Position numbers and translations under genes: made by a program | Part shown: positions 2,137 through 31,800 of the stretch, piece after piece | Layout: the number at the start of each line of letters is the position of its first letter | Numbering within the stretch: the first letter of the stretch is position 1 | Assembly (NCBI GenBank): GCA_047495785.1 | Contig: JBLDXI010000033.1 | Coordinates: 1,674,001 to 1,738,000 of the forward strand | Direction: 5' to 3' | DNA length: 64,000 nt | Source: Lepidodermella squamata | Lineage: Eukaryota > Animalia > Gastrotricha | The notes under the pieces: generated by a model | What the model was told of the DNA's origin: nothing | Seen by the model: the letters and a program-made list of their open reading frames with translations, nothing else | Database searches by the model: none

Positions 2137-3222
2137 ATGGCGGACGGAACTTGCTGGGCTGCCGGGAAGAAATCGTCAGCCCCGATAACTTACCCTCCAT
2201 TCGCAGATCATAACCGCTCATTAATGCGCAAACACCTCAGCCCAGAGCTGTTCGAGCAATTAAAGGACAAAATGACGTCAAAGGGCACAACACTTCGCGA
2301 CATTTGCGTCACCGGGGTCGTTAACCAGCATTCATTGGTTGGCATCTACATGGGCGATGAAGAGTGCTACCATGCTTACAAGCCTTTGTACGACCGGATT
2401 ATTGAAGATTACCATGCGCCTTATAAGGTGGCTGATACGCATGTGACAGATTTCAACCCAAGCCATTTGAAGGTCACTAACCCAGATCCGGAGGGGAAAT
2501 TCATCAGATCAACCCGAATTCGGGTAGCTAGAAACCTAAAAGGTTTCGGCCTGGCTTTAACCCTGACGACCGAAGAACGCCTTGATATCGAGAGGAGTGT
2601 CGTTACAGTTCTAGAATCTCTCGGCGGTGAATTCAAGGGCAAATACTGCCCATTGAAAGGAATGGATGAAGAAACTCGGAAGCAGCTGGTCGCAGATCAT
2701 TTCCTGTTCAAGAAAGAAGACAACTTCAAGGCATCGGCCGGTATTCTAGACGACTGGCCTGAGGGTCGAGGTATTTTTTTCAATGATAACAAAACCTTCT
2801 TAGTCTGGATCAACGAGGGCGATCACGTCAGGATCATCTCAATGCAACCTGGTGGTGACATTGAGGCGGTTTTCACCCGCCTGGCGACCGCGGTTAACGA
2901 GCTTAGCTCAAAGCTAGGTTTCCAGACTAATCAGCATCTTGGAAACCTGACTTCATGCCCGAGCAATCTCGGAACAGGAATGCGGGCTTCAGTTCACGTC
3001 AAGATCCCACACGCCAGTCAACACCCTGATTTTCAGTCTGTTCTAGACAAGTACCACATTCAAGCTCGGGGTATTGATGGCGAACACTCGGAGTCGAAAG
3101 ACGGAATCTACGACATTTCCAACCTACGCCGCCTTGGCCAATCAGAGGTTCAATGCGTCCAGGATATGTACGACGGCGTGACTAAGCTGCTCGAGATGGA
3201 AAAATCGCTTGTCTCGGCTTGA
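2137..3222 (+). CDS. Phosphagen (arginine kinase-like) kinase paralogue A, divergent active site
   Basis: Intronless 361 aa; STRIRVARN, WPEGRGIF, CPSNLGTG, RGIDGEH motifs; NEGDH instead of NEED(H/Q); HSLVGIY instead of DSGVGVY. Confidence 0.93.
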   Translation: MADGTCWAAGKKSSAPITYPPFADHNRSLMRKHLSPELFEQLKDKMTSKGTTLRDICVTGVVNQHSLVGIYMGDEECYHAYKPLYDRIIEDYHAPYKVADTHVTDFNPSHLKVTNPDPEGKFIRSTRIRVARNLKGFGLALTLTTEERLDIERSVVTVLESLGGEFKGKYCPLKGMDEETRKQLVADHFLFKKEDNFKASAGILDDWPEGRGIFFNDNKTFLVWINEGDHVRIISMQPGGDIEAVFTRLATAVNELSSKLGFQTNQHLGNLTSCPSNLGTGMRASVHVKIPHASQHPDFQSVLDKYHIQARGIDGEHSESKDGIYDISNLRRLGQSEVQCVQDMYDGVTKLLEMEKSLVSA

Positions 3223-7193: not shown

Positions 7194-7347
7194 AAATGAC
7201 GGCAATCGGTTCGAAAACTTGAAAATTCCTCCTTAATAACATGATGATTTTTCTTTAATTTACTTTGATTATTAACTCGATTTTTCACCTTCTTTCTTTC
7301 TTATAGATCTTATTTATTGATTTGTTGCCAAGATCTGAATTTTGACT

Positions 7348-8445
7348 ATGGGCTGCGCCAATAGCAAGACAAGTGATAGCGTGTCTAAGGGAGCCTTGAC
7401 CTATCCTAAATGGGAGGAATCTAACCACTCTCTCCTCCGCAAATACCTGACCGAAGAAGTCTTCAACGAGTTGAAGGACAAAAAATCGTCCCGCGGGGTC
7501 ACCCTGAAAGATATCATCAATTCAGGAGTTGTCAACCAAGATTCCGGCGTTGGCGTCTACGTCGGCGATGAGGAGTGCTACACGCTTTTCGGGCCTCTTA
7601 TCAACCCTGTTGTCGAAGATTACCACAAGCCGTACAAAGTGAGCGAGACTCATCCGGCTGATTTCGACCCAAGCCACCTCAAGGCGCCTAACCCTGATCC
7701 GTTTGGAAAGTACGTCAACTCAACTCGTATCCGAGTCGCCAGAAATCTCAAGGGCTACGGCCTGACCCCGACCTTGACGAAACAAGAACGGCTGGATGTC
7801 GAGAAGAAGGTTGTAGCAGTTCTGGAATCTCTTGGCGGTGAATTAAAGGGCAAGTACTACCCGTTGAAGGGCATGGACGAGGAGACGCGGAAGAAGCTGG
7901 TTGAGGACCACTTCCTGTTCAAAAAGGGTGACCGTTTCTTGGAGGCTGCTGGCATCAACCACGAATGGCCGGAAGGTCGTGGCATTTTCCACAATGACGA
8001 CAAGACCTTCTTGGTCTGGGTCAACGAGGAAGATCAACTGCGCATCATCTCAATGCAACCTGGCGGCGATATTGAAGCTGTTTTCAAGCGTCTGGCTACT
8101 GCTGTCAACGAGCTGAGCTCCAAACTTGGCTTCCAATTCAATGACCACCTCGGCTACCTCTCCTCCTGCCCGACCAATCTTGGAACCGGCATGCGAGCCT
8201 CCGTGCACGTGAAAATCCCCAACGCCTCGAAACATCCTGAATACCAGGCAACTCTTGACAAATATCACATTCAAGCTCGCGGTATCGACGGCGAGCATTC
8301 CGAGTCGAGCGACGGCACTTACGACATCTCGAACAAGCGTCGTCTCGGCCAGTCGGAGGTTCAATGTGTTCAGGACATGTACGAGGGCGTTAAGCGGCTG
8401 CTTGAAATGGAGAAGACGATGGCGGCTTCCGGCTCGAGTAAGTAA
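7348..8445 (+). CDS. Arginine kinase paralogue C with N-terminal MGCANSK acylation motif
   Basis: Canonical AK motifs DSGVGVY, KGDRFL, NEEDQ, CPTNLGTG, GEHSES; MGCxxS(K) fits N-myristoylation plus Cys palmitoylation. Confidence 0.95.
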   Translation: MGCANSKTSDSVSKGALTYPKWEESNHSLLRKYLTEEVFNELKDKKSSRGVTLKDIINSGVVNQDSGVGVYVGDEECYTLFGPLINPVVEDYHKPYKVSETHPADFDPSHLKAPNPDPFGKYVNSTRIRVARNLKGYGLTPTLTKQERLDVEKKVVAVLESLGGELKGKYYPLKGMDEETRKKLVEDHFLFKKGDRFLEAAGINHEWPEGRGIFHNDDKTFLVWVNEEDQLRIISMQPGGDIEAVFKRLATAVNELSSKLGFQFNDHLGYLSSCPTNLGTGMRASVHVKIPNASKHPEYQATLDKYHIQARGIDGEHSESSDGTYDISNKRRLGQSEVQCVQDMYEGVKRLLEMEKTMAASGSSK

Positions 8446-11672: not shown

Positions 11673-12444
11673 ATGATGGCGGACCAACATGCGCCAGGGA
11701 CTATAACCTGCAAAGCAGCCGTGGCGTGGGAGCCCAACAAACCGCTGTCAATCGAGACAATCCAAGTTGCTCCACCGAAAAAAGGCGAAGTTCGCATCAA
11801 GGTGATGTCAACAGCTATTTGCCACACCGATGTTATCGTCCTCGATGGAAAGCCCATAGCACGGGGCGAGCTCAAATTTCCAATAATTCTTGGCCATGAA
11901 GCCGCTGGAATTGTCGAGAGTATCGGCGACGGTGTTACTTCAGTTTCGGTCGGCGATGTTGTGATCCCAATGCCACTGTGCCAGTGTTACGAATGCCCGC
12001 CTTGTAAGAACTCGGTGTCGAACATGTGTACAGCCAATGGTGAAAGCCGTGGGGCTGGATTTATGACCGACTTCACGAGTAGATTTACCTGCAATGGCAA
12101 GGTGCTGTACCACTTTCTAGGCTGTAGTACCTTCTCAGAATACACCGTGGTCTCCGAGTTATGCCTTTGTAAAATCAACCCAGAATCGCCTTTGGATATT
12201 GCTGCGTTACTTGGATGCGGTTTCCCGAGTGGCTACGGCGCAGCGGTTCAAGCTGCCAGGGTTTTTAGGTAGGTACAAGGTTCGCGATGAAATTCCGAAG
12301 TTAATGGACGAATACTTGGCCGGAAACCTTCCTCTTCAAGAGCTCATCAGCCACAGAATGGACTTCAGCCAAATAAACGAAGCTGTTGATCTGTCCCGAA
12401 AGGGTATTAGCATCCGAACTGCTGTTAAAATTCACGAAATTTAG
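11673..12444 (+). pseudogene. Zn-dependent ADH (class III-derived) with the NAD-binding domain deleted and a frameshift
   Basis: GYGAAVQAARV runs directly (~12260) into FLGRYKVRDEIPKLMDEYLAG in another frame; ~380 nt including GxGxxG missing relative to the intact paralogues. Confidence 0.85.
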
Positions 12445-19932: not shown

Positions 19933-21063
19933 TTATTGGCCAACTTTAAGCGCAGTTCTAACGCATTCTGAAGCACCAGTCAGCCGGAAAGCTTCATTAA
20001 TATCTTTCAGCTCCATTCGATGCGTGATCAGAACGTCCATTGGCAATAATCCAGCCAGGTAATCATCCATTTCCTTCGGAAGGAAATCCCGTGGCTTAGC
20101 TCGCCCGATGTCAACACCTCTGATTTTTCGCCCAGTCAACAGCAGAGCAGTAGGTATGGAAACTTCACCCAAGGCGCCGGGCTGAACTCCGATGAGAATA
20201 CACTCGCCGTAGCCGGGGTTGCTGGCATTGAACGCGTCCAAAAGTGTCTGCGGTCTACCTACACATTCGAAGGTGTAATTGCAGTCTAATCCTCCGGTTG
20301 TCTTGTTGATAGCTTCAACGGCATTGGCAGCAGTTGGGTCGATGAAATCAGTCGCGCCCAATGATTTCGCAAGCTCCAACTTCGAAGCTTTCGGATCGAT
20401 CACGATGATTTTGCTGGCACCAGCTCGCTTACAGCCAATTAGGACCGATAGGCCAATGCAACCCAGACCCCAAATTGCGCAGTAGTCGCCCGGTTTGACC
20501 TTAGCAGCTAAAACAGCGGCGCCGTAACCAGTCGTAAATCCGCATCCGAGTAGGCCAGCAATGTCAAAGGGTGAATTTGGGCTCAATTTCGAGAGCTGAA
20601 ATTCATTGCAAACAGTATACTCGCTAAACGTACCGCAGCCGAATAGGGTCCAAACAGGTTGGCCCTTGCAGGTGAACCTAGAAGTGCCGTCGTCTAGGGA
20701 ACAATTCATCACGCTGTTAACACCGGCGGAGCAGTTGTTCGATTCAGGATGGCGGCAATCAGGGCACCTGTAGCACTGGCTCGAGTAGCATGGGACGACA
20801 ATATCGCCGGCGGCTAGTCCCGTCACGCCCTCGCCGACGCTTTCAACGACCCCGGCGCCCTCGTGGCCTAGAACGATTGGGAACTTGATTTCAAGGTACT
20901 GAATCGCGCCTGTTCTCGCTGAAAGATCGGTGTGGCAGACGGAAGTTGACTTGATCTGAACGCGAACTTCGCCGCGTTTTGGTGGGGCGACCTCGATTGT
21001 TTCGATCGTCAACGGCTGGTTAGCAGCCCATGCAACAGCGGCCTTGCAAGAGATGGTGCTCAT
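19933..21063 (-). CDS. Zn-dependent medium-chain alcohol dehydrogenase, class III-derived, copy 1
   Basis: CHTD, GHEGAG, four structural-Zn Cys, GCG, GLGCIG; intronless 376 aa. Confidence 0.95.
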   Translation of the reverse strand: MSTISCKAAVAWAANQPLTIETIEVAPPKRGEVRVQIKSTSVCHTDLSARTGAIQYLEIKFPIVLGHEGAGVVESVGEGVTGLAAGDIVVPCYSSQCYRCPDCRHPESNNCSAGVNSVMNCSLDDGTSRFTCKGQPVWTLFGCGTFSEYTVCNEFQLSKLSPNSPFDIAGLLGCGFTTGYGAAVLAAKVKPGDYCAIWGLGCIGLSVLIGCKRAGASKIIVIDPKASKLELAKSLGATDFIDPTAANAVEAINKTTGGLDCNYTFECVGRPQTLLDAFNASNPGYGECILIGVQPGALGEVSIPTALLLTGRKIRGVDIGRAKPRDFLPKEMDDYLAGLLPMDVLITHRMELKDINEAFRLTGASECVRTALKVGQ

Positions 21064-21959: not shown

Positions 21960-23090
21960 TTACTCGCCCACTTTCATGGCAGCTCGGACGCATTCACTGG
22001 CAGCAGTCAATCGGAATGCTTCGTTGATGTCCTTCAACTCCATGCGGTGAGTAATAAGCTCTTCTAGGGGCAGTAGACCAGCGAGGTAGTCGTCCATCTC
22101 CTTCGGAATGAAATCTCTTGGCTTCGCGCGTCCCAGATAAACGCCTCGAATTTTACGTCCTGGCATTAGGATACTGGTTGGTATGCTGAGCTCACCCGCA
22201 CCGGGCAAAACGCCGATAAAAATGCACTCGCCATACCCGGCGTTGCTAGCATTCAAGGCGTCAAGCATTGTATTTGCCTTCCCAACACATTCAAACGTAA
22301 AGTGGCAATATTTTCCTTTAGTAAGTTTCTGTATCTCCTCAACGGCATTGACAGTAGTTGGATCGATGAAATCAGTCGCCCCTAATTTCTTCGCAATTTC
22401 GAATTTCGAAGCTTTCGGATCGATCACGATAATTTTGCTTGCACCAGCTCGCTTGCAGCCGATGAGTACCGATAGACCAATGCAGCCTAGACCCCAAATT
22501 GCACAGTAGTCACCTGGTTTGACTTTGGCTGCCAAAACAGCCGATCCGTAACCGGTCGTGAACCCGCATCCGAGTAGGCCAGCAATGTCAAAAGGCGAAT
22601 TAGGGCTCAGTTTAGCCAACTGGACTTCGTTACAGACTGTATACTCGCTGAATGTCCCACATCCGACCATTGTGTATACTGTTTGGCCTTTGCAGGTGAA
22701 TCTCGATGTGCCATCTTCCAAGGAGCAATTCAACAAGCCAACTAAGCCTGCTGGGCAATTGTTGGACTCTGGATGACGGCAGGCATCGCAGTTGTAGCAT
22801 TGGCCCGGATAACCGAAGGGAACAACAATGTCTCCAACAGCTAAGCTTGTAACCCCCTCTCCGACGCTTTCGACTACGCCGGAGCCTTCGTGACCCAAGA
22901 TTATTGGAAACTTAATTGGAAGGAATTGCAGAGATCCGCCTCTCGCAAAGATATCAGAGTGGCAAACAGATGTTGATTTGATCTGAACGCGAACTTCACC
23001 GCGTTTCGGCGGTGCAACCTCGATTGTTTCGATTGAAAGAGGCTCGTTAGCGGCCCAGACAACGGCAGCTTTGCAGGTAATTACGGACAT
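21960..23090 (-). CDS. Zn-dependent medium-chain alcohol dehydrogenase, copy 2
   Basis: CHSD, GHEGSG, GLGCIG; 376 aa, close paralogue of copy 3. Confidence 0.95.
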   Translation of the reverse strand: MSVITCKAAVVWAANEPLSIETIEVAPPKRGEVRVQIKSTSVCHSDIFARGGSLQFLPIKFPIILGHEGSGVVESVGEGVTSLAVGDIVVPFGYPGQCYNCDACRHPESNNCPAGLVGLLNCSLEDGTSRFTCKGQTVYTMVGCGTFSEYTVCNEVQLAKLSPNSPFDIAGLLGCGFTTGYGSAVLAAKVKPGDYCAIWGLGCIGLSVLIGCKRAGASKIIVIDPKASKFEIAKKLGATDFIDPTTVNAVEEIQKLTKGKYCHFTFECVGKANTMLDALNASNAGYGECIFIGVLPGAGELSIPTSILMPGRKIRGVYLGRAKPRDFIPKEMDDYLAGLLPLEELITHRMELKDINEAFRLTAASECVRAAMKVGE

Positions 23091-23777: not shown

Positions 23778-25375
23778 ATTCTGATTCTGATTCTGATTCT
23801 GATTCTGATTTTATTATGCATTTTGTTTCACAACAGTTAGCAATAGGTTAGTTCTCGGCGCCTCACCTTAGAGGTCGTAAAATCCACTAGTTCATCTGAC
23901 TTAGATTTAAGATATCGCAGAAACACAGTATGAGAATTATTGACAATAGTTGAGGGCAGCCGGTTCCACGCTGCGCGCACACGCCTTGTGAAGCTGAACT
24001 GAGAGCTCGGATGTTCAAATCGTTTCATGACAACAGCATGAGCTGGTGAACGGGGATTTGAAGATATTTTGAAGAATGTAGAAAAGCTAGCATCCACACA
24101 GCCTAGGTACATTTTATGGCATAGCGCAAGGTCATGTTGAAAGCGTCTGATTTCAAGAGGACACAGTCCTAGTTTTTTACATCTTTCATAATACGAGGCA
24201 CCGTCAATCGATGAATAGTAGTCACTTCTATACAAAAGACGTTTAGTGAACCGGGCTTGAACCGCCTCCAGCTTGTCAATATCTGTTAAGTAGTACGGTG
24301 AATAGACCGAAGGGCAAAAATCTAACCGTGAAAGAGTGTATGTTTTGTACGCTTTTAAGCGGAGAGATTTCGATGCGAATGATTTGCATATCACGCCGTT
24401 AATCCTTTGGCAACGTGTAGACAACGCATTACAGTGCTCAGAGAACGTAAGGTGTTTATCAACAATAATTCCGAGATCTTTAACTGAATCGACAGCGTTT
24501 AGCTCAACATCTTTCACTTTGAACTGAAAGGGAAATGTGTTCTTTCCAAGACTGAGAACAACGCATTTTTTTGGATTAACGGATAAACCATGTGAATCAA
24601 GCCAGCTGATGATTTTATCGAGATCTGATTGAAGTTCGATGCAATCGGCAAGACAGCGAATAGCATGATACAGCTTCGTATCGTCAGCAAAGAATTTCGT
24701 GATCGATGATTTGATCAACGTGTTGACATCAGTCGTGAAGATCAGGAAAAGCAACGGTCCGAGCACCGAGCCTTGGGGCACTCCGGAAGTAACGGTCGAC
24801 CACGAGGACGTGCTGTTATTCACGGCTACTCTGAAATAGCGGTCACACAAGAAAGCTCTGATCCACGCGTGCACATTGCCACAGATATTGATGTCAGAAA
24901 GCTTAGATAATAACAAAGTAATCGGAACAACATCGAAGGCTTTCGAGAGGTCAAGATATATCACTATTACGTCAATTAGTTGATCAAGGAACTCTAACCA
25001 TTCGTTGACACACGACAACAACTGTGTTTCGCAACTTCTCCGTGACAGAAATCCAAACTGATTTTCTGAGATCAGATTGTTTCTATAAAGGTACAGTAGC
25101 ACATGATCCTTTACAATCGTTTCCTGAATTTTGCAGATCACACATGTCAGACTCACAGGGCGATAATTCCCAACACACGAGGCATCGCCGTTGCGTTTAA
25201 AGATCGGCGCGACATTCGCATGCTTCCAGACCACTGGGATCTCCCCTTGAGAAAACGAAATGTTGAAAATCATTGCCAAAGGTACAGCCAAGGAGAGAGA
25301 TAGCTTCTTTATAAGTACAGCCGGTAGATTATCGGCACCACCGATGGGTTTATCTTTAATACCACAGATCACATT
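23778..25375 (-). mobile_element. 5'-truncated non-LTR retrotransposon (CR1/L2-like), uninterrupted RT ORF 25372-23837, (AATCAG)n 3' tail
   Basis: NYRPVSLT, QFGF, YLDLSKAFD, SGVPQGSVLGPLLF, FADD, KDLGI; five ATTCTG units at 23778-23807 (+ strand) just past the stop; no endonuclease domain. Confidence 0.93.
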
Positions 25376-25698: not shown

Positions 25699-26826
25699 TC
25701 ATTCGCCAACTTTCATGGCAGCTCGGACGCATTCACTGGCAGCAGTTAATCGGAATGCTTCGTTGATGTCCTTCAACTCCATGCGGTGAGTAATGAGCTC
25801 GTCCATGGGCAGTAAACCAGCGAGGTAGTCATCCATCTCTTTTGGAAGGAAATCTCGGGGCTTCGCGCGACCCAGATAAACGCCTCGAATTTTGCGGCCA
25901 GGCATTAGGATACTGGTTGGGACGCTGAGTTCACCCATACCCGGCAAAACGCCTACAAAGATACATTCGCCATACCCGGCGTTGCTAGCATTTAAGGCAT
26001 CAAGCATTGTGCTGGCTTTACCAACACATTCGAACGCAAAGTTGCAATCCTTTCCTTTTGTAAGCTTCTTTATCTCCTCAACAGCATTGACAGCAGTTGG
26101 GTCGATGAAATCGGTCGCTCCCAATTTCCTCGCTATGTCGAATTTCGAAACTTTCGGATCCATGACGATGATTTTGCTCGCACCAGCTCGCTTGCAACCA
26201 ATGAGTACTGATAGACCAATGCAGCCGAGACCCCAAATCGCGCAGTAGTCACCCGGTTTGACTTTGGCTGCCAAGACCGCTGCTCCATAACCAGTCGTGA
26301 AGCCGCATCCAAAGACACCGGCAATGTCAAAAGGTGAATTAGGGCTCAGCTTAGCCAACTGGACTTCATTACAGACCGTATACTCGCTGAAGGTCCCGCA
26401 ACCAAATAAAGTGTTGACTGTTTGGCCTTTGCAGGTGAATCGAGAGGTGCCATCATCCAGGGAGCAATTAATCACGCTTTTCAGGCCAGATGAGCAATTG
26501 TTAGATTCTGGATGACGGCAATCATCACAGTTGTAGCATTGACTCGTAAAGCAGGGAACCACGATGTCTCCAATGGCTAGACTCGTAACCCCCTCTCCGA
26601 CGCTTTCGACTACGCCGGAGCCTTCGTGACCCAAAATTATTGGGAACTTGATAAGAAGGAATTGAACAGCTCCGCCTCTTGCAAAGAGATCAGTGTGACA
26701 AACAGATGTTGATTTGATTTGAACCCGAACTTCACCGCGTTTCGGCGGTGCAACCTCGATTGTTTCGATTGAAAGAGGCTCGTTAGCAGCCCAGGCAACT
26801 GCAGCTTTGCAAGTAATTACGGACAT
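25699..26826 (-). CDS. Zn-dependent medium-chain alcohol dehydrogenase, copy 3
   Basis: CHTD, GHEGSG, GLGCIG; 375 aa. Confidence 0.95.
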   Translation of the reverse strand: MSVITCKAAVAWAANEPLSIETIEVAPPKRGEVRVQIKSTSVCHTDLFARGGAVQFLLIKFPIILGHEGSGVVESVGEGVTSLAIGDIVVPCFTSQCYNCDDCRHPESNNCSSGLKSVINCSLDDGTSRFTCKGQTVNTLFGCGTFSEYTVCNEVQLAKLSPNSPFDIAGVFGCGFTTGYGAAVLAAKVKPGDYCAIWGLGCIGLSVLIGCKRAGASKIIVMDPKVSKFDIARKLGATDFIDPTAVNAVEEIKKLTKGKDCNFAFECVGKASTMLDALNASNAGYGECIFVGVLPGMGELSVPTSILMPGRKIRGVYLGRAKPRDFLPKEMDDYLAGLLPMDELITHRMELKDINEAFRLTAASECVRAAMKVGE

Positions 26827-27165
26827 GTCTGTAGTTTTTCAGTTCAGCTGTTAATATTTCCCAACATTTTCCCAACGCATTAAGCTTTGTGTTAGCACAA
26901 TGTGGTCACACCTCACAGACTTCGCAAGAGATAAGACCCTACCGCACAAAAACGGCGATAACCAACCATGTGACTTGGGAAACCGCTACCTCCTTAAACA
27001 CGGATAGCTGGTTGGAAGGATTAACCACATCGTTAAATAAATTTAATTAGAAATGGTAACTACGCCTTACAAATTACACATTACACACAGCAAATCAAGC
27101 CCAAAACCGAAACACTATATTATTTAGATGTTATTTGTAGCTGGAGTCATCAATGCCACGGCCCA

Positions 27166-28479
27166 TTATCCGCAATTTCCAGTAGACTTCGGCTTGTAGC
27201 CCCAATTGCAGCAGTAAATAGTGCCTGGAATAGGTGGCATATTCACGGAGTCGACAGATACCCCACCGCAATCGTGAGCGTTCAAAGGAGGCGACCCGGC
27301 AGGAACCCAGCCTGAGGTAGTGGTGCTTTGCGTAGAGCCTGCTTGCGTCGTGCTTCCCTGCTGAGTTGAGCTCTTTGTCGTAGTGCTTCCGCCTGCAGGT
27401 GTCGAGGTAGATGTCGGAGAGACACACTTACCATCACTAGGTACGAAACCCCAATTGCAGCAATAGATTGTGCCAGGGATGAGTGGCATGTTGACTTCAT
27501 CAGACGATTGGCCGTTACATGTGTAGGCATTAGCAGGAGGGCCAGCTGCTGAGTTACCGCCACCGTTCGGCGATGGAGGAGCTAGGCCTGTGTCGCATGG
27601 GACGGGCCTAACAGCCGTGATATTGCAGCTACCTGACGAGCCAGATGTTCCACATAACTGATTGAAAGCTAAGATGTCTACGTCGAAATGAGGGTGGTTG
27701 TTACTTGCACACCAGTCGCACTTGTCGACAGTTATCGAGCAGCCGTATCCGGCGCATGTGTTGTACCCGAGTTGTGGCAAAGTTCCAGCGCATGGATTGT
27801 TTGGGAACAAATTCACCGAGTCGTAGCACTGCTGTTCACCGCATTCGTGGTACATAGTTTGATTTTTAGTGTCAGTCGAACCATCGCATCGGCAATATCC
27901 AGCGCATCGATCCGTAACTGCGACCGTTACTTTGCCGCCAGCGCCTGTCAGCTCGTAGCATAGACCAGAGGCATGCGTAAGACCGAGACCCCAAAGAGGG
28001 ACGTAACTGCCACTGCTGATGTGGGCAATTTGCGAGTTCCCCATAAGCATTGGCGACGTAGCGGCGATTCCAACGCAATTCGCTCCATTTCCTGAGCTTT
28101 TGCATAAAGGGATGTTCAAAGAAGCTGACGCATTTTTGGCCATGTCATAAACGCTGCCACCCAAGGCTCCGTTGCAGCCTCCAGTGGACAATTCACAGTA
28201 GTAAGTTGCTTTCGCCATTGGTGACGTCGCCAGTCCCTTGTAAGTACCGGTATAGTTGCAACGTCCATCGACGCATTGGCCAAGACCAGGTGGGCAAGTT
28301 TCAGGATTGCAGAATACAGGTGGCAGGCAAACTTGAATCGAGCTCGTTATGTTGACGAGGCTCCCGAGCTGTTGATAACCGCATGCTTGAGCGCCGACGA
28401 TTTGCGAGACAATTCCGCCTGGCAGGTCTGTAGCCAAGGTGACCGTAACTAGAACAGAACAAAATATGACGAGAAACAT
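27166..28479 (-). CDS. Secreted expansin/GH45-like (DPBB) protein, 437 aa, with S/T linker and two Cys-rich C-terminal modules
   Basis: ATG 28479 starts signal peptide MFLVIFCSVLVTVTLA, TATATA at ~28536-28542; ATYY...GGC, GLCYELT...VTVAVTDRC, HPHFDVDILAFNQLC fit the expansin/GH45 DPBB pattern; intronless. Confidence 0.72.
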   Translation of the reverse strand: MFLVIFCSVLVTVTLATDLPGGIVSQIVGAQACGYQQLGSLVNITSSIQVCLPPVFCNPETCPPGLGQCVDGRCNYTGTYKGLATSPMAKATYYCELSTGGCNGALGGSVYDMAKNASASLNIPLCKSSGNGANCVGIAATSPMLMGNSQIAHISSGSYVPLWGLGLTHASGLCYELTGAGGKVTVAVTDRCAGYCRCDGSTDTKNQTMYHECGEQQCYDSVNLFPNNPCAGTLPQLGYNTCAGYGCSITVDKCDWCASNNHPHFDVDILAFNQLCGTSGSSGSCNITAVRPVPCDTGLAPPSPNGGGNSAAGPPANAYTCNGQSSDEVNMPLIPGTIYCCNWGFVPSDGKCVSPTSTSTPAGGSTTTKSSTQQGSTTQAGSTQSTTTSGWVPAGSPPLNAHDCGGVSVDSVNMPPIPGTIYCCNWGYKPKSTGNCG

Positions 28480-28803
28480 GTTGATTTGGTAATTATCAGG
28501 AAGAGAAACATATTTAATGGCTGGAATCGTTCGGTATATATACCCTGGAAAACAGCTGGCTAAACTTGCACCGACGTCAATTTTTTCATCGGCGTCATCC
28601 ATGAGTTTCGGAAAAACTACTGTTCTATTTACTTGCACCGAGACAACGACGTTTACCTCGTTGCGATATGCGTAAAACGGAAATCTTATGACGCAGTTTT
28701 CAGAACGTTTTATTGATGCAAAATATTTGCTTATTCAATCATGTGATAATATATCATGTCCAAGTTTGATCAGTCGCCAATTTTCGTCGTTACCAGCCGA
28801 TGT

Positions 28804-31800
28804 TTAGTGGCCGCAGAACTGTGATCCCGAAATTTCCATATACTGAAATTGGCATTTTTTACAACAAATAGCGGAGATGTGCGAAGAAACTTACGTAAAG
28901 CAAAGAACCATCAGAATCTCGTTGGCCTTGGTAACCAAATGGCTCGAATTTGATCTGCTTCGATGAATCGCAATTAAGGAAAGCGACTGTTCGTCTCGGA
29001 GTACCATCGGCGGCCGACGAGTCAGAGACTAGAGCTAAGGCTGCCTTAGGATGCCGATCATTGCTTCGTAATTCGAACCGGGTTGAATTGGCAGAGCCAA
29101 TATCCATGTTATAAGTTAGCTGCAGGGAATACTCGCATACCTAAATACACGAAGAAAGCTCGAAGCTGAATCAAATGATGTTAAGGTGGTTCGTACCGAA
29201 GCCACTCCGTTGCATAACGGATAGCGATTATCGTAGATAGGTTCAAAGAATGAGTAATCGTAGGAGAAGCGCTCTCCAGTTCCCGATATTCTTGATTTAA
29301 TATAGTGGGAATTAAAGTGAGAATCTTGAGCGCTAGAGCTTAAGTTACCTGGTGCCAACCAGAGAAGTAAGTTCGACTGTTCCTAAGCCATTAGTTGTAA
29401 CACATACGGGACTTCCTCTCTCGTAGTTTTTACAAGCTGCATTGCCTATACATTTTCTTACAGAAGACAGATGTCATTGAAAAAGTCAGCTCACTTGGAT
29501 TTCGAATAGGGCAAAAAGTAGAGCCAGTGAATTCGGCGAACTGCAAAATTTAAAAAATTCAATAACAATTTACAATAAAATATGCTGCTTTTACATAAAC
29601 TTGGTATCCATCGGCGTCTTTAAGGTAGCTGCCGCCAGTGGTGGTGAAGTTGGCAACAGCCGGTGCATCTGGCTCACATTTCAAAAAGGCCACCGTGCGA
29701 CTCTTGGTCGCGCTGTTGTCGTTGACAAGCGCTAAAGTAGGGCCGTTATTGTTCGCATCGTATCTAAGCTCGAATCGTGTGTTCTCCGGTCTCCCAATGT
29801 TCGACTCCGTATTCCAAACCGTGCTGTATCTGCAAACCTAGAGAATTCATAGAGTGATGAAAAGGGTTCGAACGAAGTTCCACAGAAAGATCTTATATCT
29901 TATCAAGATGGCCGTTCATATTACAAGAAATTGAAATTAAACTGAGGGGGAGCATTATGGGAAGCAATTTATAGGGTGGTAAAAAGGGGCTCCTTTCAAA
30001 TAGAAAAACTTCCTTTCAAATAGCGACAACTTACCGCTGCCGATTCGAAGCAGAATGAGAAGCTTGGATCCTTATTTACGCCACAAAAGGTGTAGGCATA
30101 ATTGTTATCAAAGTCATCTGATGCGACGTATCTGCAACACGACAGATTATCATAAAAATGAAACGATTTCTAAACATTTCTCACGGGTGGTAATAGGTTG
30201 TTTCGACTAGCGGCGATAGATCAACTGTCCCTGTTCCGTCCGCCAATTCGCAAATGCACCATCCGCGTAAATCAGGGTTGCATGCGGGTTTACCTTTTAA
30301 GTCATCAAACCTTAATGTACAGGCGGGATGGAATGAAGCTAGCTTTTACCGGGTAGAAGTCGAGGGCAGAAGTCAGATCCGAACATTTGGAAATACTACA
30401 AGGAAAATTGCAACCAGGCGCTGAATTAAACAATTGAACTCACGTAAATATCGTAGCCATCGAAGTCTTTTTCCTCAATGAACGATGCAGGAAAGAATAT
30501 AGGATCAGGGAGGTCGAGACATAATGTGAAGACAATCGAGCGGCGCTTGGTGACAGGGCTTTCCGTTACGATGGCCAAAGCAGGATTAGGGCTGGTGGAG
30601 GAATAAGGGCTGTGCCGTAGCTCGAACCTTGTTCGGAGAGGATCGCCAATCAGCACGCCACCAGGAGCAGCATCGAAATATTGGCAAGCTGATGACTGTT
30701 TATAGCAGTTATAGTGGGATGCGTTGTTAAGATAGTTGCAGAAGGCGTAGTCGTAATGGTAGCCGTCTTCGTAGCCATGAAGAGGCTCAATAGCGGTTTT
30801 CTGAACTAGCCTCGATAGGTCGATATTGCCCCCGCCATTTGCAAGCATGCAGGAGCAAGAGCCCTCTTTCGAGCTTTCCTCGCAAGCCGGTTTCGGATCT
30901 GAGAAATGCTTAGAGAATTAATCTAATATCATTAAAATCGAGTTGTTTACAAGGGTATTGAGGGCAAAAAGCGGATCCAGTCAAATTTGCATGCTAAAAA
31001 TAAGAATACTAAACTTTGAATCCAATTGGAAAATACAAACTTACATATAATTCTTTGCCATCAGTATCCCGAAGGCCATCGTAGTCGAAAGGTGAGAAAA
31101 CTGGCTCAGTGATACTCGAGTCGCAGGAGAGGAAAATAACCATTCTTGCTTCATATCCAAACATGGCATCAGCGACAATAGCCAAATTTTGGCTAGAGTA
31201 GAACGACGACCCGGGGTACGTTCTATATTCAAAACGCATGGTCGCCGGGTCTCCAAATGGTAGACCTCCCTGAGTTGGAGGAACAGTCTTTTGATAACGG
31301 CAGATCGCTGCATTTCCATTGCAACGAAATAGGAAGGGATCATTATTCAAGGTGCCAAAGAGCGCCAAGTCGTAAGAGTAATGGCCGGAAGGATCAGTAG
31401 CCTGATACGGTCGAGTTCGAGTAGAATTAGCGATTGATGTCAAATTCATCCACAGGTAGCTTGAGGACGGATCAGAAAGCTGGCACTCACTGTTGCCAGG
31501 TTTGTAGTCTTCATTTTGGCAGGCGGACCTTGGTGACGCTGGTCAAACTCAAAATTATAGTATTTCATGAAATTCCTTTCTATTGCTTACGTGGTTGAAT
31601 GGCACATGCATCTGCGCCTTTGATGACTAAGTACTATAAACATTACAATCTCTGTCTGTATTTGTTATTTCATCACTTAGACTGATTACTTACCTTTAGC
31701 TCATATCCATCCAAATCATAGAAATTGTTTCCTGGTTGGTAAGATTTCAATTCCAGAGTACGCTCGATACCGCAAACTAAAAACGAGATTGACCGCAAGC

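Follow-up and report, generated by a model that had tools for sequence, protein, structure and literature searches.

Our study of a stretch of the genome of the gastrotrich Lepidodermella squamata (contig JBLDXI010000033.1, positions 1,674,001 to 1,738,000 of the forward strand; all 64,000 nucleotides of it are hereafter called the window) revealed a minus-strand gene of 437 codons that is likely to be an expressed, single-copy host gene of foreign ancestry. Its product is predicted to be a secreted, disulfide-rich and probably glycosylated protein built on a double-psi beta-barrel (DPBB), and to work by a wall-active mechanism. It is well established that small animals acquire genes for wall degradation, with examples from glycoside hydrolase families 45 and 9 (GH45 and GH9) and among expansin-like genes in nematodes, rotifers, springtails and molluscs, and the type of event is therefore not new. 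What is new is a compact, strongly conserved DPBB family that is covered by neither Pfam, NCBIfam nor the Protein Data Bank (PDB), of which no member has been studied, and whose members connect Myxococcota with a slime mould, the clubroot pathogen and an animal. The literature searched contained neither the family and its architecture nor the link between the animal and a plasmodiophorid.

Genomic residence and transcription

The gene is physically part of the host genome, is expressed and is under purifying selection. Its residence was indicated by host genes at 150-350 nt on both sides, by haplotypes and depth held in common with them, and by the presence of the sequence in two public runs, X1 and X2, from independent studies dated 2015 and 2024. 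In run X1, which behaves as DNA, two haplotypes at a depth of ~1:1 run through the gene and through the flanking lectin and alcohol dehydrogenase (ADH) genes. The haplotype differences listed inside the coding sequence (CDS) all fall at third codon positions and are synonymous (18/18), which is strong evidence for purifying selection. The GC content at third codon positions (GC3) was 0.51 in the gene and 0.45-0.55 in neighbouring genes; among homologues it was 0.78-0.90 in four high-GC sequences of Myxococcota type, and 0.58 and 0.24 in two others from metagenome-assembled genomes (MAGs). This host-like GC3 indicates that the gene has been resident for a long time.

Run X2 is labelled only ‘RNA?’, and its nature was read from its contigs. 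Within the lectin gene, six joints skip 48-197 nt with GT..AG ends on the minus strand; depth is zero in the intergenic bin 26896-27082, and contigs cover the expansin-like gene from ~27083 to 28445 with no skipping joint inside it. These features mark run X2 as RNA-derived and show that the gene is transcribed without splicing. The sequence-only reading of this DNA, made by a model from the letters and open reading frames (ORFs), had described an intronless gene ~325 nt from a lectin gene on the same strand, and both observations held: the 437-codon ORF is uninterrupted, and the distance fits the end of the lectin gene at 28804. The same reading took the lack of introns as a pointer to horizontal gene transfer, which has to be discounted as weak evidence of origin because the neighbouring ADH and arginine-kinase ORFs of the host are likewise uninterrupted.

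One X2 contig breaks off at 28445, where 25 of its letters stay unaligned, just 3' of a pyrimidine tract and AG (28461-28449). The break might reflect a divergent allele, a different 5' end of the transcript or faulty assembly. A reading in which a separate 5' exon or a spliced leader joins at the AG of 28449 would fit the contig end; it was judged less likely because the contiguous ORF gives a signal peptide collinear with that of the homologue in Plasmodiophora brassicae (see below) and because X2 contains other strand-flip artefacts.

Fold and classification of the protein

The fold was predicted with AlphaFold2 from a 73-sequence alignment, and the resulting model had a mean predicted local distance difference test (pLDDT) score of 82 and was poor only in the signal peptide and the linker. 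Comparison of the model with 48,161 PDB representatives by VIA-align placed DPBB proteins in all of the best 14 chains (Z 5.3-7.5, 87-123 residues aligned). Domain 1 of bacterial, fungal and plant expansins scored Z 6.7-7.5 (root-mean-square deviation 2.0-2.7, 96-102 residues aligned), followed by cerato-platanin (6.6), barwin-like proteins (6.5), GH45 enzymes of mussel and Phanerochaete (6.3-6.4), kiwellin and a Streptomyces papain inhibitor (both 6.0), loosenin (5.8) and PA4485 (5.3); MltA-type transglycosylases reached just 2.7-3.6. The top 44 matches from Foldseek were GH45, expansin, kiwellin, barwin, cerato-platanin and related DPBB proteins, with a best E of 0.04, and a structure search of the ESM-Atlas returned expansins, EXLX1, barwin and cerato-platanin with template-modelling scores (by target) of up to 0.61. 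A language-model search gave leads only, all within the same clan. Taken together, the model supports a DPBB fold with a core at residues 88-299, a Cys-rich head at residues 30-86 and a large insert at residues 193-261. The signal peptide, the Cys-rich N-terminal domain and the DPBB core with TDRC and HFD motifs proposed in the sequence-only reading were thus recovered by sequence, model and three fold searches.

At the level of sequence, the only Pfam match was DPBB_1 (E 0.0015, 19.1 bits against a cut-off of 28.8, residues 238-275) and the only NCBIfam match was expansin_EXLX1 (E 0.007, 15.7 bits against a cut-off of 100, residues 168-197). These two weak matches coincide with the two conserved strands of expansin domain 1 and keep their order, with the 69-residue Cys-rich insert between them. 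Matches to the 73 members scanned were sub-threshold as well. No match to Expansin_C/CBM63 was found at E≤1, and past residue 300 the model consists of short strands in two modules of ~40 aa; Glyco_hydro_45 (PF02015) likewise gave no match at E≤1 in the query and none in the 73 members scanned.

The groove residues of expansin domain 1 and GH45 (Thr of the first strand, Asp of the TD strand and Asp of HFD) are retained across 51 divergent members of the family: T92 in 50/51, D190 in 48/51 and D266 in 49/51, with H264 and F265 kept in all 51. The Asp of HFD, which is the catalytic acid in GH45 enzymes, is present as D266. Residue 96, which follows ATYYC and is a motif-based guess for the GH45 base (the equivalence comes from motif alignment, not superposition), is D or E in 24/51. 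In all, the near-invariant positions are T92, Y94, C95, D190, R191, C192, D255, W256, H262, H264, F265, D266 and D268, of which D255, H262 and D268 are extra conserved residues specific to the family.

On these sequence grounds the protein is assigned to a separate, unannotated DPBB family that is neither expansin nor GH45. It is not placed among expansins because it lacks CBM63/Expansin_C and reaches 15.7 bits against the EXLX1 cut-off of 100; it is not placed in GH45 because there is no PF02015 match and no conserved base at the presumed position. The predicted structure is related to both expansin domain 1 and GH45. The description ‘expansin/GH45-like’ in the sequence-only reading consequently stands as a statement about fold class, but not as membership of either group.

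Comparison with known systems follows the same lines. Expansins (plant EXPA and EXPB, and microbial EXLX1, for example of Bacillus subtilis, Clavibacter michiganensis and Streptomyces) are alike in the DPBB fold of domain 1, in the collinear TD...HFD groove motifs and in being secreted. Microbial expansins have a patchy, transfer-prone distribution (10.1101/637728). The present protein differs from expansins in having no CBM63/Expansin_C, in a core split by a 69-aa Cys-rich insert, and in the addition of a Cys-rich head and two novel 37-aa C-terminal modules. GH45 enzymes of subfamilies B and C (mollusc Cel45A/EG27II, Phanerochaete PcCel45A) are among the top Foldseek matches, whereas insert and module architecture differ. 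Subfamily C of GH45 is described as having no conserved classical base and following an inverting route without one, and the apparent lack of a conserved base in the present protein recalls it; GH45 genes are also known horizontal acquisitions in some animals. Loosenins, cerato-platanins and barwin, which have been reported to bind or loosen chitin or cellulose, are alike as stand-alone DPBB proteins without CBM63. However, they measure ~100-130 aa, have no insert, head or C-terminal modules, and show no sequence-level match to the present protein.

The protein as a whole contains 33 Cys, five N-glycosylation (N-x-S/T) sequons and a 42-residue Ser/Thr-rich linker. The head follows the pattern CGY...CLPPV.C..ETCPP.LG.C..G.C. 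The C-terminal module, a small unit of Cys-knot type with 37-39 residues, follows C..SF.C...VPGT.CCCN.....DG.C and occurs in one or two copies, usually C-terminal, in 76 of the collected proteins. Modelled alone it reached a pLDDT of 92.7, but it matched nothing in fold searches (best Z 2.3, to TIL-type inhibitors; best Foldseek E 2.5) and remains unclassified; a word search with the module alone found no sequence relative outside the family.

Occurrence of related proteins

A word-indexed search of 5.8 billion proteins recovered 166 relatives at 90% clustering. Among the matches listed (120 of the 166), E ranged from 1e-61 to 1e-139, no Pfam domain was assigned, and those with names were MAGs of Myxococcota, Polyangiales and Labilithrix. 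An exhaustive HMMER scan of 1.84 billion cluster representatives (50% identity) found 110 proteins at E≤0.001, and on this count the family is small and compact. In 185,579 prokaryotic species genomes, 16 loci were found, 12 of them titled Myxococcota, Myxococcales, Polyangiales, Polyangiaceae or Labilithrix; the remaining titles were three Deltaproteobacteria, a ‘Kapaibacterium’ MAG and a ‘Rickettsiales’ MAG. A lipobox was present in 53/95 members starting with Met, which suggests that most members are bacterial lipoproteins.

Identity among the animal protein, the Myxococcota lipoproteins (for example the Labilithrix and Polyangiales MAG proteins P0006 and P0010) and the P. brassicae protein (P0001) is 43-62% over head, core, insert and modules. 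The bacterial members carry lipoprotein signals and 6-Cys modules, whereas the animal and P. brassicae proteins have eukaryotic signal peptides, 4-Cys modules and extra insert residues. One bacterial member bears a CBM_2 domain. Eukaryotic proteins bearing EGF modules occur in the distant tail of the family, among them P0203 of the slime mould Ceratiomyxa fruticulosa (EukProt), in which EGF and the DPBB of the family are joined to a GH18 chitinase domain (hhalign 99.6%). Another of them, P0239 (L019:164-1228), bears Expansin_C (hhalign probability 98%). Judged by their domain content, P0203 and P0239 appear to bridge the new family to true expansins.

A well-supported, AT-rich subclade (P0160, P0162, P0167, P0171, P0172 and P0180) has an N-terminal membrane anchor in place of the signal peptide or lipobox, and one of its contigs has an HMG-box neighbour; its host may be a protist or a large virus. 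Another member, P0140 (L021:3226-4425, and L008), was binned as ‘Candidatus Kapaibacterium’ and lies on a contig of GC 0.37 with small, mostly unannotated genes. Contig L021 carries two HNH_3 genes, an alginate lyase and a faint match to Pox_A32 (A32-ATPase); the contig may be viral or eukaryote-associated and have been misbinned, and as evidence for a viral carrier it is suggestive at most. A scan of IMG/VR with the family patterns found no relative, and a virus-borne copy was unsupported there.

Origin of the gene

The sole close relative of the animal protein was P0001, which scored 482 bits, against 300 bits for the next match, and was 52-62% identical according to the alignment used. P0001 is present in the protein collection solely via a Logan assembly. 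Its contig (L001, GC 0.60) also encodes Rpc4, WD40, Armc9 and PRELI proteins, and the PRELI protein is 100% identical to a protein of P. brassicae and 73% identical to one of Spongospora; P0001 was therefore identified as a gene of the clubroot pathogen P. brassicae. The gene, orthologue-like and intact, lies at L001:292-1806 (+); its 504-aa product has long Ser/Pro linkers in addition to a signal peptide and two modules. In the papers searched on the genome and secretome of P. brassicae, no pathogen protein of expansin-like or DPBB type is mentioned. With a protist gene as the only close relative, the question of transfer between eukaryotes is raised.

No animal relative was found in the 5.8 billion proteins or the 1.84 billion representatives, in which most matches were unnamed, and a scan of metagenome contigs for close relatives of the animal protein returned none. 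A foreign origin of the animal gene is well supported by these sequence comparisons, in agreement with the sequence-only reading, which had named it a candidate for horizontal transfer; a broad vertical distribution among animals was not seen.

Several derived features are common to the animal protein and P0001. Both have a eukaryotic signal peptide followed by a mature end LPGGIVSQ, both contain the same extra residues in the insert and read GCNGALGGS where bacteria show GCHGVTQ, and both have lost the same Cys pair (a disulfide) in both modules. Because of these derived features, one shared ancestor of the two genes, eukaryotic or very specifically bacterial, appears more likely than two unrelated captures. 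A phylogeny of 51 rows was inferred with IQ-TREE (LG+C20+F+G4 by posterior mean site frequencies), with the root unknown and long branches in play. The animal gene and P0001 formed a clade (100/99) on a long stem, and all named Myxococcota fell in a 23-row clade (98/98) that excluded this pair; the AT-rich, membrane-anchored group and the EGF-bearing eukaryotic group branched elsewhere. We propose that the gene would have been acquired horizontally, from a derived ancestor common with the P. brassicae gene, with a Myxococcota-centred family as the ultimate pool and either a bacterium or a protist as the direct donor.

Two other histories bear on this proposal. That the sequence is contaminant DNA, or an assembly chimera inside an animal scaffold, could be argued from its relatives, which are all microbial, and from run X1, in which no single Logan contig spans the whole stretch. 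Contamination was nevertheless rejected as highly improbable, given the same two haplotypes in the gene and in its lectin and ADH flanks, a host-like GC3 unlike that of the high-GC bacterial homologues, the occurrence of the sequence in two independent studies, and the host genes that flank it; the gene also has poly(A)-like signals and a TATA-like box. Direct donation by a myxobacterium, with the P. brassicae gene as an independent capture from the same unsampled bacterial lineage, is quite possible, although on balance we doubt it. Myxococcota lipoproteins form the bulk of the family, the full architecture, including one or two C-terminal modules, exists in bacteria, and a topology that unites the animal and P. 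brassicae pair with the bacterial clade was not rejected by an approximately unbiased test (p 0.234). The free tree, however, sets the pair outside that clade, and the shared type of signal peptide with LPGGIVSQ, the shared indels and the lost disulfide are easier to explain by one eukaryotic ancestor.

A wider interpretation, which we regard as unlikely, is that the family represents a new mobile class of wall-active DPBB proteins with the signature D-W-C...H-P-H-F-D-L-D and a new miniature carbohydrate-binding module, and that it passed from a phytomyxid-like protist to an animal, the opposite way or by means of a common vector, as well as between eukaryotes and Myxococcota. If this were true, the P. 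brassicae version would be an unrecognized wall-opening factor in a crop pathogen.

Function

The layout of the protein resembles a catalytic domain joined by a linker to carbohydrate-binding modules, and the C-terminal modules after the Ser/Thr linker are placed, by analogy, like the carbohydrate-binding modules of secreted glycanases. The integrity and transcription of the gene, purifying selection, the fold class, the conserved residues and the distribution of the family were established from the data, whereas the substrate, the choice between loosening and cleavage, the binding role of the modules and the site of secretion are inferred. The open DPBB groove, which would be lined by T92, D190 (of TDRC) and H264-F265-D266 (of HFD) together with D255, H262 and D268, may bind a beta-1,4-linked structural glycan, either cellulose or chitin. 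The chains would then be pried apart without hydrolysis, in the mode of expansins and loosenins, or be cut by inverting cleavage without a classical base, in the mode of GH45 subfamily C. As the presumed position of the GH45 base is not conserved, the protein may loosen without cutting or cut without a base; the terminal modules would tether it to the polymer. The family lends itself to testing whether hydrolysis, or loosening alone, is achieved by a DPBB that has TD and HFD motifs but no classical base, and it also offers a candidate new binding module.

The most likely sites of secretion would be the gut or the food itself, where the protein would open the walls of algae, fungi or plants. 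For a microphagous animal, release of the protein onto the walls of its food is plausible, and wall digestion is a reasonable reading of the sequence. Chitin is as likely a substrate as glucan, since the family includes fusions with CBM_2 and with GH18 and P. brassicae has a chitin-centred biology (PMC4471660). For a tie between the gene and the neighbouring lectin genes, whose products resemble proteins with mannose-6-phosphate receptor homology (MRH) domains and which the sequence-only reading had suggested as possible partners, adjacency is the sole fact.

Two other functions were weighed against wall loosening or cleavage. A lytic transglycosylase of RlpA/MltA type, acting on bacterial peptidoglycan and aiding a bacterivorous animal in the digestion of its prey, would fit the only Pfam match, as DPBB_1 is described as ‘lytic transglycolase’, and the bacterial members, which are lipoproteins like RlpA; RlpA-like PA4485 was also among the top chains (Z 5.3), and myxobacteria are predators. 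We consider this improbable, as the MltA-type enzymes scored Z 2.7-3.6 compared with 6-7.5 for expansin, GH45, barwin and cerato-platanin, the HFD motif and the Expansin_C-bearing relative indicate the expansin/GH45 branch, and the fusions are with CBM_2 and GH18 rather than peptidoglycan-binding domains. We give similarly little credence to a non-enzymatic DPBB binder or inhibitor, whether an adhesive or elicitor like cerato-platanin, a blocker like kiwellin or the papain inhibitor, or a structural matrix protein. Cerato-platanin, kiwellin and the Streptomyces papain inhibitor lie within 1.5 Z units of the best match, and a very Cys-rich protein with a mucin-like linker would suit such a role, but T92, D190, H264, F265 and D266 are kept in 48-51 of the 51 divergent members, and these groove positions would be superfluous for an inhibitor.

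The preferred reading, of an expressed host gene of foreign ancestry with a wall-active product, has several points to its disadvantage. The fold scores are middling (Z below 8; Foldseek E 0.04), the sequence matches to known families are all under curated cut-offs, and the family profile found nothing among PDB sequences; the fold matches are convincing only because every top match has the same DPBB fold. The stretch 28446-28578 is without an X2 contig, so that the start codon and the 5' untranslated region lack RNA confirmation. Close relatives of the host are not in the databases, which restricts the absence from animals to those animals that have been sampled. For the modules, searches by structure and by sequence gave no match, which makes their carbohydrate-binding role a guess. 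Bacterial neighbourhoods (10 flanking ORFs) are not conserved, containing malic enzyme, a two-component system, a glycosyltransferase, ThiI and others, and gave no functional clue.

Gene and protein features

The minus-strand ORF spans 27166..28638, and the ATG at 28479 is the first to give a signal peptide, yielding a protein of 437 aa. The CDS (27166-28479) is free of stop codons and frameshifts. The gene is present in one copy within the 64-kb window, where tblastn found no second copy. The N-terminus reads MFLVIFCSVLVTVTLA followed by TDLPGG, a typical eukaryotic signal peptide. TDRC occupies residues 189-192 (nt 27915-27904) and HFD residues 264-266 (nt 27690-27682). The coordinates of the features are given in Table 1.

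Table 1. Features of the expansin-like gene and its product, in window coordinates
Feature	Position	Strand	Basis
Complete single-exon CDS, 437 aa plus stop (stop codon 27166-27168)	27166..28479	-	ORF list, sequence, tblastn, RNA-derived contigs
Candidate TATA box TATATATA, 56-63 nt 5' of the ATG	28535..28542	-	Read from sequence
Candidate poly(A) signals AAATAA / AATAAT, 30-50 nt 3' of the stop	27118..27136	-	Sequence; X2 depth zero 26896-27082, present from 27083
Predicted signal peptide, ~residues 1-17 (MFLVIFCSVLVTVTLAT)	28429..28479	-	Read from sequence
Cys-rich N-terminal subdomain, residues ~30-86, small beta hairpins	28222..28392	-	Invariant Cys columns; model strands E39-76, pLDDT >90
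Predicted DPBB core, residues 88-299: T92, TDRC 189-192, HPHFDVD 262-268	27583..28218	-	VIA-align, Foldseek, Atlas, residue conservation
Family-specific Cys-rich insert of ~69 aa, residues 193-261, between TD and HFD strands	27697..27903	-	Alignment
C-terminal Cys module 1, residues 316-356 (...C..PGT.YCCNWG...C)	27412..27534	-	Alignment; module model pLDDT 92.7; no fold match
Ser/Thr-rich linker, probably O-glycosylated, residues 357-398	27286..27411	-	Composition; pLDDT 30-38
C-terminal Cys module 2, residues 399-437	27169..27285	-	Alignment

Neighbouring genes

The gene lies between a class-III-type ADH gene (25699-26826) on one side and a spliced MRH-lectin array (from 28804) on the other; farther away in the window are a long interspersed nuclear element (LINE)-like reverse transcriptase (RT) ORF, additional ADH copies and two arginine-kinase-type ORFs. 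The ADH genes resemble S-(hydroxymethyl)glutathione dehydrogenase and comprise three tandem, uninterrupted copies of 375-376 aa, all on the minus strand (19933-21063, 21960-23090 and 25699-26826), of which the last is covered by RNA-derived contigs of run X2. The LINE-like RT ORF (23837-25372) lies between ADH copies, and an ORF fragment with ADH_N only was found at 11673-12272 (+). The two arginine-kinase-type (ATP:guanido phosphotransferase) ORFs, of 361 and 367 aa, are also uninterrupted and lie 4 kb apart at 2137-3222 and 7342-8445 (+). The window thus mixes several intronless genes with lectin genes that hold many introns of 48-197 nt.

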